DNA of 37,823 bases from Salpingoeca rosetta (GCA_033442325.1 JAWQFM010000032.1:725401-763223); one strand, 5' to 3'. Shown: positions 29,711 to 37,565, numbered from the stretch's first letter. Notes: generated by a model from the sequence alone, not told the origin. A program made the numbers and translations.

Positions 29711-30876
29711 CAAGCACGCACACACACACGCGTATTCATGCCCTTGTTATATCCTGCATCGTACCAGAAGCAATCTCTGCAGTACACAGCGCATTTCACG
29801 AATGAGTGAGCGGAAGTGCATATGCGTTTGAGAACAAGTGAGGGTTCGCTAAGTGGCGCCGCTCACATCATTTCGAAAGAGCCCAACCCTCTGTTCACGT
29901 CTTCCTCGCTATCACCACGACAACCACACCGAAACGCCGACGACGACCACCCTACCACCATCATCTAACGTTATCAACCATCATGATCATGATGAATCGC
30001 CTCCTCACCCGCCGCCGTTGTGCCGGGCCGTCGGTCCCAGGATGACGCGGTACTGCTGGTTCCCGCCGTACATGTTGTTCAGTCCGCCCCACGTGAACGA
30101 GAACGAGCAGCTCTGCCACGTCGCATCCTGATGCGACGAGTACTGGCACGACGACCACGCAACGTTCTGCTCAAGGTTGCGGCAGTCCTGCAGGCGGTGG
30201 TTGTTGTACACGCCATATGTCATCGGGTCGTCGCCCCAAGTGATGCGCACGTGCTCGCCGGCTCCATACGCAGCCCCGCCCCCGCCAGCATAGTGGATCA
30301 GCATTTGCCTGTGGCAATTTGGTGTCGGTGAGGAAAGGGAGGGGAGGAGAGGGTATGGTGTTAGCACTCACCATGAAGCAGGTGGTGTCAGCAGAGTGGA
30401 TTGGGCGCAGGGAAACATGTGGCAGAAGGGGAGCAGATACACGAGGACAGACACAAAGCGGTGCAAACAAATAAGCACGCGCTGACGTTGTTGGCTGGGT
30501 GTTGAACCAGAGGCCGGAGAATGAGTTGTAGCCAAGACTCGATGCGTCCACCATGGCGTTGGCATCCGTCACAGGGAACTCTGTGATTTGCCTGGAACGC
30601 ACCATTGGAGGCACCAGTGGAGGCACAAGGGGACAATGAGCAATGATTGGGAGAATGTGAAGAAATGTCCTCCCACCACCGCCACTGTCAGAGAATCATC
30701 ATCATCACCACCGCCGCCAGCAGCGTACTGGTCGTTGAGGTGCGCTGTGCGTGTCCACCCGCCGCCGTCCGTCTCCATGTCGCAATACACGTCAAGCGTC
30801 GCCTTGCGCGTAAACCCGGCAGGCCCTGTCGGTTGGGACGGAGGAGGGGGGAAGTAAGTGGTGATGTGTGTGTGTA

Positions 30877-32932: not shown

Positions 32933-34058
32933 CCTGCTGCACGAGTGAGCGGAGAGAGGTAAACTCGGGCTGCTCCGGCAGGTTGAGGACCACGTCCTCG
33001 GCCAGCACCTCCAAGGTGCCGTCCACCACGGCCATTTCGGGCACAACTACACCAAGCACCGAGTATTCACATCACGTGCATACGTTGTACGCGCGGCAAT
33101 GGCAAAGCGAAAGCACAAGTGAGTGTGATGATGAGAGGGACGAGCCAGCCACACCCAAGCACCAGCGGCTGAAACACCACCCATACCCAAGTACCAGCGA
33201 TACTGCGGCTACATGCAGTGCCAAACTCACAGCAGCCGTTGCCTTCGTGGTCTGCGGTGCCAGCAAAGCCCGGTTTGCAGCGGCAGATGAAGTCCAGGCC
33301 ATTTGCAGTCTCCTCACACAGCTGCTCCCCGCATGGAGATCCAGCGCACATGTCCACATCTGTGTGTGCGTGTGTGGATGGATGGGAGGGTGAGGAAGGG
33401 ATTTAAACGTAAGATGTGAGGGGGGCGGGATGGAGAGTGAATTAAAGGGGCAATATGCGTCGAAGAAAGCGCCCACCTTGACAGGACTGTCCTGACACAA
33501 CCGGCTCGAGCGTGCCGTCAGCTGTGCACTGTACGTCGTACGAGTCTGCATCACCTGCGATAAGAATGAAGCGATGCGGATGAGTGGCGGGTGAGTGGGT
33601 GAGTGGGTGAGTGGGTAAGCAAGCATCAAAACCCACGCACACAACACAGACACACAGACACAGACACACACAGACACACACAGACACACACAGACACACA
33701 CAGACACACCGGAAGCACGGGTGCCAGGGTTGCAGGAGAAGGTCACGGTGTCGCCAAAGAAGAGCTCAGAAGTGGACTCCGGGTTGGCGTTGGACGTGGG
33801 TTGCGGTGTGCCGCAGGAAACAGGGAAGCAGGTCGTGGATTGGTTCGACGCCGCGTACCCATCAAAGCAGCTACCGCAATCACCAGACCCAGCACCGGCG
33901 CCACTGCACGCGTTTCGGTTGAGCTCCACACAAGATGAAGCGGCGCCAAGCGCCACACACGCCGCACTGTCTCCGGCCGCGCTCACCACAGCCACCTGCG
34001 CTGGTGCAACCACCACCAGCACACACAACAACAACAACCAGCGAACAACAAGCCGCAT
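29288..34058 (-). CDS. Secreted protein: signal peptide, Cys-rich/EGF-like, Sushi(CCP), EGF, coiled coil, fibrinogen-related domain
   Basis: Signal peptide MRLVVRWLLLLCVLVVVAPA. Cys-rich CVELNRNAC...CGSCFDGY. CCP-like VSCGTP...FGDTVTFSCNPG...VQCTADGT. EGF DVDMCAGSPCGEQLCEETANGLDFICRCKPGFAG. Heptad segments LSTALETEVTTARDNE, GLAGDLNDLSGRVDNV and EVQALRDELSQLK. Fibrinogen-like PKSCLDVKNINPSAQSGIYEIRPAG...VYCDMETDGGGWT. The likely last exon is ANDWAGAPDKEGYIYFR* (stop 29288-29290); an alternative stop lies at 30005. Confidence 0.82.
30934..31373. other. Assembly gap (440 N) inside an intron of the fibrinogen-like gene
   Basis: Run of N. The flanking exons (…GIYEI c | gg cct gcc…) splice in frame across it. 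Confidence 1.
32769..32868. other. Assembly gap (100 N), intronic
   Basis: Run of N. Confidence 1.
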
Positions 34059-34131
34059 CTTGCTTGCTTCTTGCTTGCTGCCCCCAACACACACAAAACT
34101 GAATTCAGTGTGGAAGCAAAGCCGCACAACC

Positions 34132-34640: not shown

Positions 34641-35936
34641 CTAATACGCTGAGGCTGCGTCCACATCGCACTTCTTGGCCTCTCGCACCAGCTTCATGGC
34701 GGGACCCATTGACACACCGGAGGACCGAAGCGTCTGCTTTGTCAAGTCGCCCTCATGTACGAGAGCCACCAGCACCTCCAGGCTGTCAATGCCGTGCTCC
34801 ACCAACGCGGCTTCGACGTGCGACAGCAGCGAGTGGCGGTTGAGCCATTGAATGAGCTCTGGCTCGAATGGTGATGAGGATGAGGGCGATGGGGTGGTGG
34901 ACGGTGGGGTGAAAGTAGTCATGACGGTGGAGGACGAGGAAGATGACTGCAGGGCAGGTAAACAAGAGGATGGGTAACACATTGTGAGCACGAGTGGAAG
35001 GAGCGGTCATGTGCACACACACACACGCACAGCAGATGCACACACACACACACACGCACAAGCACACACAAGCATACACAAAATACCATACCTGCGTGGA
35101 ACGACGTGCTGTGTCTGCTTCTTGCGTTGTTTGCTCCTCACTCCTGGCAGAGGAGACAACCTGGCGCACCTTCTCCGCGATGTCGCGCAGCTGCGACGTG
35201 CGGTCCACAGCGGCGTCCAATGCAACCACGGCGTCAATGTCAAAGAGCGACAGTACCACTTGACGCACGCTCTTGTGCCGCTGTGGCGGTGGCAAGTGTA
35301 GCACCTGCGTGAAATACTGGTCCAGGGCTGATGTCGTCTCCTTGCTCACAGCATCTGGCAGCGTCATCGCCAGCCGCTTCAGGCGGTCAAACGAGTCGTA
35401 TTCGCTCACTTCGGCCCTGCTCATACTGCTGTCGTTCACATTGTGCCACGCGCTGCCAACAATCACGGGCACGACACGTCGAAGGCGAATCCTGGCATGT
35501 TGCTGCTCCTCGTCTGCCGAATGCGCCCCCTGGTGCTCGTGCAGTGCCAGCATCGTCATCCACTCCAGCAGCACGTTGTCGCAGTAGTCGCTGTGCTGCA
35601 GCTGCCTCATCTGCATGATGGTGGCAGCAGAAACAATGGGGCAGGCCACCAGGCTCAGCCCAATCGCCGTCATGAACGACAGCTTGAAGTTGAGGCCCGT
35701 CTCCAGGTTGTTGGCGTCCAGGAACGCAACCAGGTTGCGCTGCTCCAAGCGCGGATGCAGCGCCATCACCAGCCCACTGCTGGCGCGTTGCCTGTGATGT
35801 GTAGGGGAGGGAGAAGGGTGTGTGTGAGGTGAAGTGTTGGGCAGCAGTAGTGGTGGGTGGAAGTGACGGACACGTAAACAAGTCATGGGCACACAGACAC
35901 ACGCTTGCACACGCTCACACGCACACACTTGCACAC

Positions 35937-35970
<34 letters not shown>

Positions 35971-37565
35971 CTCACCTGTAGCTGATGAAGACGTCGTACT
36001 TGTCCTGGAGGCCGAGAACGGGCAGAAGAGGGCCATATTTGGCGACCAGGTCATCGGGTGACAGCAGCTGCTCGTCCACCCACATGTCCTGCTTGCTCTT
36101 GTGGTGGTGCAGCACGTCCTCAAAGAACAACAGTGTCTTGTCGTCAAATGGCACCAGCAGGCTGCTCTTCAGCTCAGGATAGCGCTCTCTGGCGGCCTCG
36201 CTAATCATCTTGTGCAGCATATGCAGCATGGCGCGTGGCTGCGCACTCGTGATCTTCATCTTGATGCCGCCAACAGCCGGCACAAGCTGCAACTCAAGCT
36301 TGGTCGACTCCATGAAGCAGATGGCGTGGGTGCGACTCAGCTTGGGTTTTTGCGATGCGCCGTGCTGGGCGTGCGCCATCACATGCGCTAACACAACCGT
36401 AAACAGCCCCTCTGGCAGGAAAGACGCATGCTGTGCATGCTCAGCTCTCACGCTCGCTTCTGTCTTGAACTCCTTCAGGCTGAAGGCGACGTAGGCCGTC
36501 TTCTCCTCGTGTCCAAGATATGGATTGACCTGCTGTGCTGCTGTCGTGCTCAGAGTGACAGATTCCATCGTGCTGCTGCTGTGGCGGATCGTCATCGGCA
36601 GGATGGCTGGGACCAGGTATTGCTGCTGCTGGTGCTGCTGGCGTTGGTGTGCGTCATTGCCCTTGCTCACACCATCGTTGTCACCGTGGCCGGAGTTGGC
36701 GTGGGCGAGCGCTCTGCGGCTATCCACCAGCTTGGGTGGAGAGTATTGAATGCACAGCCCATATTGCATCATGAGGCGCAGGAACGGGTCAACCAAGTTG
36801 CTGTCCACGTCTCTCCACAACACCTCCAGCAGACGACGGTGCAGGATGCCGCGGTCGACAAGGTCGTCCCACACGTCGGCGCCAAGTGCCCGCACCTCCG
36901 GCCCCTGCACATCGTCGTCGTGCAGGCCAAACGTGCGGATGACGCGCGTCATCGTGTCCACCGCCCACTGCGGGCTCAGGATCACATAGGCGTCCATGCC
37001 AGGCACGCTGTCGTAGTACAGCACCATTGAGTACAGGTGCAGGAACTGGAGGCAGGCTCTCGTCTCCTGGCGTGTGCGCAGCCCACACGTGCGCGCAATC
37101 GCCACCACCTCATCAAACGTGAGCAGCGGTCGCTTCTCGTCGCGGGCGATGGCGTTGAGCTTGTCGTAGAGGTGGAGGTACGGCACAGCCACCTCCTGGC
37201 TCACGTACTCCTGCGCCAGCGCGGTGGAGGAGATGGTCTGGCGCAGGTCCTGGATCATGGGGTCGCCGATGGACTTGGTGTTGTCGACGGGCCAGAACCA
37301 CAGCTTGTGCTTGCTGTTGTACACAACAGAAGCGAAGGCCGGGTTGTGGCGCAGGCGGCTGTGGATGTCACGCGAGATCTGCTCATGTTGCTTCCGCTGA
37401 CTGACCACATCAGCGAAGGTGCCGACGATGAGGACGGGCGCGCCTTTTGCATGGAGGTGGAGGGAGGAGAGCCAGTGCTCCATAAACTCCCACGCCTCGG
37501 TCCGCTTGCTCTCGTCTTGGTGCAGCAGGTCCTCCATGGAGAACACCAGCAGGTACACTGCGTAC
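34641..37565 (-). CDS. Roco-family protein, 3' part: C-terminal half of Roc GTPase, COR, TIR, SAM (5' end outside the window or unresolved)
   Basis: Exons 35976-37565, 35092-35791 and 34641-34946 splice in frame. Roc: YAVYLLVFSM...HWLSSLHLHAKGAPVLIVGTFAD...WPVDNT...IQDLRQTI. COR: VPYLHL..L, LQFLHLYSMVLYY, VILSPQW, GILHRRLLEVLW, YLVPAILP, LPEGLF. TIR: YDVFISYR...AFLDANNLETG...PIVS...DNVLLEWMTML...VVPVIVG. SAM: ELIQWLNRHSLLSHVEAALVEHGIDSLEVL...LRSSGVSMGPAMKLVRE. Confidence 0.88.

Follow-up and report, generated by a model that had tools for sequence, protein, structure and literature searches.

A TIR domain of the choanoflagellate Salpingoeca rosetta has already been assayed for enzymatic activity. 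This domain, residues 1034-1255 of F2UB80, is recorded as active and as producing cADPR, with residue 1118 as its catalytic residue and with blank cells for 2'cADPR, 3'cADPR and NAD+ depletion (Table S4, row 33; bioRxiv 10.64898/2026.04.20.719644). Catalytic residues in that study were set by structural alignment to ThsB E85, and mutation of the glutamate ended cADPR production in all cases shown (bioRxiv 10.64898/2026.04.20.719644). In the same screen, cADPR was the main cyclic product of human SARM1, NAD+ was depleted by a long, related Guillardia TIR, and SARM1 was placed under a different cluster representative from the family of the S. rosetta gene PTSG_09991 (bioRxiv 10.64898/2026.04.20.719644). 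For an Aphanomyces TIR with the similar motif D-N-L-L-L-E-Y, the Active cell is empty in this E. coli screen (bioRxiv 10.64898/2026.04.20.719644). Thus, the motif alone is no guarantee of activity in E. coli.

PTSG_09991 is the subject of the present analysis. It lies on the minus strand of a 37,823-nt stretch of S. rosetta DNA (GCA_033442325.1, contig 32, 725401-763223, within a 55.4 Mb assembly), which is referred to below as the window, and its features are collected in Table 1. Taken as a whole, the evidence points to an enzymatic-type, cADPR-making TIR domain that would serve as the output of a Roco family gene, a reading to which we give a probability of roughly 0.8. The public protein (P0003, 900 aa) was used as the reference sequence for all analyses of the spliced product, its residues 37-565 and 567-799 being identical to the translations of two exons in the window.

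Table 1. Features of PTSG_09991 in the window (positions counted from the first nucleotide of the window).
Feature	Position	Strand	Basis
Exon: C-terminal half of Roc, COR-A, COR-B and TIR strand A	35976-37565	minus	P0003 residues 37-565
Intron 1, GT..AG, with (CA)n microsatellite	35792-35975	minus	splice sites read in the sequence
Exon: TIR helix A to helix E	35092-35791	minus	P0003 residues 567-799 and secondary structure of the model
Intron 2, GT..AG	34947-35091	minus	spliced RNA reads
Last exon: Ser/Thr/Pro linker, SAM-like domain and TAG stop (34643-34641)	34641-34946	minus	identical to the tail of P0003
Whole TIR fold, P0003 about 556-784, intron 1 inside	35137-36007	minus	AlphaFold2 model, VIA-align and PDB profile search
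Predicted catalytic-position Glu (GAG), helix C, P0003 E642	35563-35565	minus	translation, alignments and model
Asn (AAC) at -4, at the SARM1 W638 position	35575-35577	minus	profile alignment
BB-loop segment D-A-N-N-L-E-T-G	35695-35718	minus	profile alignment

All three exons of PTSG_09991 in the window are open and have canonical splice sites. The first of them is preceded by an AG acceptor at 37567-37566 and ends with DVFISY, the residues of strand A (35995-35978), and with two bases of an Arg codon that is split between 35977-35976 and 35791. Intron 1 interrupts the TIR directly behind strand A, and all 30 of the paralog loci that were fetched have an intron at this same position behind DVFISYR as well as the invariant motif. 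Two paralogs that had been taken as intronless, L018 and L028, were rejected as such, their long open frames merely running through the intron without a stop. The peptides quoted in an earlier, sequence-only reading of this DNA are all present in the minus-strand translation, with DVFISYR crossing the intron (35975-35792). The span which that reading had given to the TIR, 35430-36005, is correct for strand A to strand D, but it is too short for the whole fold, which runs from about 36007 to 35137.

The upstream side of the gene is a run of N that starts just past the end of the window (contig 32 from about 763224) and extends for at least 5.8 kb, being either a gap in the assembly or withheld sequence. 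The P-loop half of Roc and any sensor repeats of PTSG_09991 fall within this run. The annotated N-terminus of 36 residues is outside the window and joins in the middle of Roc, and the public gene model is thus probably truncated. As a consequence of this truncation at the 5' end, the shared numbering of P0003 E642 and SARM1 E642 is a coincidence. Public annotation describes PTSG_09991 as hypothetical or as a COR-domain protein, with no TIR among the Pfam domains precomputed for it. Pfam COR-A is found with E=1.4e-17, while COR-B (E=0.0036) is under the cut-off. The window holds the C-terminal half of Roc alone; the full Roc is seen in the paralog P0001 (E=1.1e-16). Pfam SAM_2 is weak in PTSG_09991 (E=0.026) and somewhat stronger in P0001 (E=0.0038), and a relative, P0079, matches SAM_1 with E=2.4e-8.

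By single-sequence methods, the TIR of PTSG_09991 is on the edge of detection. It scores 26.4 bits against Pfam TIR_2 (cut-off 28), or 22.4 bits within the full protein, and 18.7 bits against Pfam TIR (cut-off 21.3); P0001 clears the TIR_2 cut-off with 32.1 bits. When the exon at 35092-35791 was searched alone, there was no match in the PDB and Pfam TIR_2 reached only E=0.039, since strand A sits in the other exon. A PDB search with the single sequence of the domain had the SARM1 TIR as its top match, at a weak E=0.019 and from strand A to the BB loop only. A profile of six sequences improved this match to E=4.5e-5 and reached the Glu at low posterior, and a family profile of 98 sequences found the SARM1 TIR with E=1e-11 and 48.5 bits. 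The resemblance to SARM1 that had been noticed from the sequence alone is therefore beyond chance at the level of the family profile.

The fold was examined in an AlphaFold2 model built with the 98-sequence alignment (pLDDT 94.4, pTM 0.92); a run with six sequences gave a pLDDT of 64 and was discarded. The model superposes on solved TIR domains and in this sense has the flavodoxin-like TIR fold, and all 50 of the Foldseek matches listed for it are TIRs. With VIA-align, the plant TIRs RUN1, RPV1 and RPP1 gave Z scores of 14.6-15.3 (rmsd 3.2-3.9 over 157-166 residues, 15-17% identity), with RUN1 at 15.3. Human SARM1 gave Z scores of 13.8-14.0 (rmsd 2.2-2.4 over 140/140 residues, model range 4-232, 22-23% identity). 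As judged from the model, plant TIRs and SARM1 are effectively tied as structural matches. The domain is predicted to be about 85 residues longer than that of SARM1, with the additional residues between strands D and E. The description of this TIR as SARM1-like thus needs to be divided: among solved sequences SARM1 is indeed the nearest, but in structure plant TIRs match equally well, and both the clade and the architecture differ from those of SARM1.

The candidate catalytic residue is the Glu of Y-C-D-N-V-L-L-E-W-M-T. The family profile pairs its Asp, Asn and Glu with SARM1 D637, W638 and E642 at high posterior probability, so that the two alignments made by eye in the sequence-only reading, of the Glu with E642 and of the Asn with W638, are reproduced by a profile HMM. 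The same reading had depended on the Glu being inside the active-site helix, and in the AlphaFold2 model it is the fifth residue of helix 86-103, which is assigned as alpha-C. An alternative register of Y-C-D-N-V, with Val at the catalytic position, was rejected on the basis of two profile alignments and of family conservation. The BB-loop Asp (35718-35716) and Gly (35697-35695) pair with SARM1 D594 and G601 in the profile alignment.

Conservation follows the same residues. The Glu is the sole invariant column in a MAFFT alignment of 98 sequences, and it is likewise unchanged in all 30 paralogs that were fetched. Nearly invariant columns of the 98-sequence alignment are S-Y-R in strand A, the BB-loop residues Asp, Leu and Gly, and P..S in strand C, and PTSG_09991 retains all eleven family-conserved residues. 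Among 158 aligned relatives, the Glu and the Asp at -5 are each found in 156, the Asn at -4 in 138 and the Trp at +1 in 132; the BB-loop Asp and Gly are present in 152 and 150 of 162 aligned rows, respectively. Judged by sequence, the Asn at -4 is thus the consensus of its clade and would be no lesion. The Trp found four residues before the Glu in SARM1 (W638) is absent from PTSG_09991, where a Trp follows the Glu instead.

The published assay can be brought to bear on this residue through the identity of F2UB80. Counted from the listed coordinates, its residue 1118 is the Glu of C-D-N-V-L-L-E-W, and six diagnostic peptides of the construct were found in one locus only, L024 on contig 13. The TIR exon of L024 is 63-66% identical to that of PTSG_09991, and by alignment E1118 corresponds to the Glu of PTSG_09991. 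The structural equivalence of this Glu is based on the profile alignment, the secondary structure of the model and the published assignment for the paralog. Because a paralog with the same Asn makes cADPR, a Trp at -4 is inessential for activity. It had also been suggested that the Asn might alter the activity or shift the product between ADPR and cADPR isomers. This idea, which might still apply to this copy, finds no support, as the Asn is the clade consensus and the paralog that bears it makes canonical cADPR.

PTSG_09991 is one of at least 35 S. rosetta genes with the organization (Ank or LRR)-Roc-COR-TIR-SAM. The TIR exon has at least 35 paralogs in the genome, besides fragments, and the Roc-COR exon is present in similar number. 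P0001 shows the complete arrangement Ank-Roc-COR-TIR-SAM by Pfam; for PTSG_09991 the N-terminal architecture is that of its paralogs by inference. The UniRef name for P0001, P0002, P0007 and P0008 is 'non-specific serine/threonine protein kinase', and no kinase domain was found in P0001, the one such paralog scanned with Pfam. This name was likely carried over from LRRK-type Roco proteins.

A homolog search of 1.84 billion representatives returned 1021 relatives with E<=1e-3, of which 117 had E<=1e-10. The best 150 make up a clade with D-N-V-L-L-E-W, and those that were scanned are mostly Roc-COR proteins, some with Ank and SAM; SARM1 was not among the significant relatives of the clade in this search. 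The relatives with Roc-COR-TIR include sequences from other choanoflagellates (S. infusionum, Mylnosiga), from one chrysophyte and from metagenomes. These sequences place the TIR of PTSG_09991 within a separate, large protist clade that appears to be usually fused to Roc-COR.

The TIR core is under strong purifying selection, with dN/dS of 0.00-0.11 between PTSG_09991 and close paralogs, compared with 0.15-0.28 for the rest of the exon. Synonymous divergence is also unevenly distributed. In the 84 codons with which the TIR exon begins (35540-35791), dS is 0.03-0.17 against loci L005-L014, whereas the other 149 codons (35092-35539) give 0.37-0.86 against the same loci, and the core is thus 4-5 times lower. 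This pattern suggests that gene conversion, or constraint at the nucleotide level, homogenises the TIR core.

The gene is transcribed. Nearly all stranded RNA reads over PTSG_09991 are in the orientation of the minus-strand gene, and splicing of intron 2, which joins 35092 to 34946, is seen in 4 and 31 reads of two RNA runs and in one contig. Depth falls from about 100-178 in the adjacent core bins of exon 2 to 8-13 in intron 1. Depth in the conserved core is inflated by reads from paralogs, as seen from mixed bases and from many loose ends at 35530, and in stretches specific to this copy it is low, at about 2-7. One RNA contig that ends at 35792 (run X4) shows exon 1 spliced to exon 2 with the split Arg codon as CGG rather than AGG, a synonymous difference. 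This contig probably derives from a near-identical paralog or from an allele, with a paralog favoured.

Two further open reading frames were observed on the minus strand of the window. The frame at 33072-34127 has a signal-peptide-like start, a Sushi/CCP-like Cys pattern, an EGF-like module and introns with CA repeats, and it probably belongs to an adjoining gene for a secreted or membrane protein. The frame at 30569-30790 includes Y-C-D-M-E-T-D-G-G-G-W-T, a motif that we take as characteristic of fibrinogen-related domains; the sequence around it is interrupted by N at about 30.9-31.4 kb and 32.77-32.87 kb.

By analogy with F2UB80, the most likely activity of the PTSG_09991 TIR is NAD+ cleavage followed by cyclisation to canonical cADPR, and the domain would act as a producer of signal rather than as a depleter of NAD+. 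The Glu of helix C, the Asp and Gly of the BB loop and the S-Y-R of strand A are all kept, as would be expected of an enzymatic-type TIR. It could be argued instead that the domain is of the scaffold type, working through protein-protein assembly alone with the Glu kept for structural reasons. Many animal TIRs have long been seen as adaptors, the Pfam TIR score of PTSG_09991 is below threshold, and its position -4 lacks the Trp often seen in other TIRs, W638 of SARM1 among them. Against this, the Glu is the only column that stays invariant over 98 diverse relatives, and catalysis by a paralog with the same motif depends on its Glu, which makes a pure scaffold very improbable. An enzymatic domain could nonetheless serve a different end, that of an executioner in the style of SARM1, which would kill the cell by NAD+ depletion and not produce a cADPR signal. 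SARM1 is the closest solved sequence, it likewise has a SAM domain, and in the published screen it too made cADPR as its major cyclic product, while the related long Guillardia TIR depleted NAD+. Such a role is unlikely when it is considered that the NAD+ depletion cell of F2UB80 is blank in Table S4, and that a Roc-COR-TIR-SAM protein of a different clade is unlike the ARM-SAM-SAM-TIR of SARM1.

A further concern is whether this particular copy is in working order. PTSG_09991 may be a truncated or decaying paralog whose TIR stays intact through gene conversion from active sister genes. This would fit the N run at its 5' end and the annotated N-terminus that starts in the middle of Roc outside the window, the low RNA depth specific to the copy, and the contrast in dS between the TIR core and the remainder of the exon. 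However, the reading frame is open in each of the three exons of the window and their splice sites are canonical, intron 2 is spliced in RNA, and dN/dS is low outside the core as well, at 0.15-0.28; decay is accordingly quite unlikely. The reading preferred here remains that of a cADPR-making output domain of a Roco protein. Its activity would presumably need TIR-TIR assembly; the Roc-COR GTPase switch may govern this step, with the C-terminal SAM domain assisting, and the pathway served may be immune-like or related to stress.

PTSG_09991 is now seen to carry an enzymatic-type TIR that is missing from public annotation. With it, a large family of Roco-TIR-SAM genes, found in the sister group of animals, gains a further member. 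The gain from this gene is incremental, because the catalytic Glu and the production of cADPR have already been published for a sister gene. The family as a whole is relevant to the question of how TIR signalling by way of NAD+-derived nucleotides was organized before the origin of animals, and the Asn at -4 together with the Trp at +1 represents a clade-wide variant of the active-site helix that is compatible with cADPR synthesis. A broader and more tentative proposal, which we regard as possible though rather doubtful, is that the at least 35 Ank/LRR-Roc-COR-TIR-SAM genes are diversifying, GTPase-gated receptors that parallel plant TNLs, with variable sensors and a TIR core that would make cADPR as a second messenger and be homogenised by gene conversion.

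Among known systems, the F2UB80 TIR is of the same family, with the same intron position, the same C-D-N-V-L-L-E-W and a TIR of similar length, about 220-230 residues. Its locus is a different one, on contig 13 rather than contig 32, and about one third of the residues differ from those of PTSG_09991, mostly in the loop past helix C and in the D region. The human SARM1 TIR (PDB 6O0U, 6O0Q and others) is the best match by sequence among solved structures, at the family-profile E value of 1e-11, and it has in common with PTSG_09991 the D-V-F-I-S-Y-R, the Asp and Gly of the BB loop, the Asp at -5 and the Glu of the catalytic position. Both proteins also carry a SAM domain. In contrast, the Trp638 of SARM1 is replaced by Asn in PTSG_09991, whose Trp comes after the Glu, and relative to SARM1 the insert of about 85 residues separates strands D and E. 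The architecture is Roc-COR-TIR-SAM as opposed to ARM-SAM-SAM-TIR. Architecture, insert and distinct clade all argue that PTSG_09991 is no ortholog of SARM1, and choanoflagellates possess separate SARM1 homologs (PMC6040629).

The TIRs of plant TNLs (RUN1, RPV1, RPP1 and L6) gave the highest structural scores, with Z of 14.6-15.3. They are enzymatic, have a catalytic Glu in helix C, and have a longer D region that corresponds to part of the PTSG_09991 insert. The products of plant TIRs include 2'/3'cADPR and other nucleotides. They differ from PTSG_09991 in sequence, with 13-17% identity and an HMM alignment that ends before helix C, and in being fused to NB-ARC-LRR, where the TIR of PTSG_09991 is fused to Roc-COR. 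ROCO proteins such as LRRK2, DAPK1 and the Dictyostelium Roco family have Roc followed by COR-A/COR-B upstream of an output domain, an arrangement that PTSG_09991 would share. In those proteins the output is a kinase, whereas in the family of PTSG_09991 it is a TIR together with a SAM domain.
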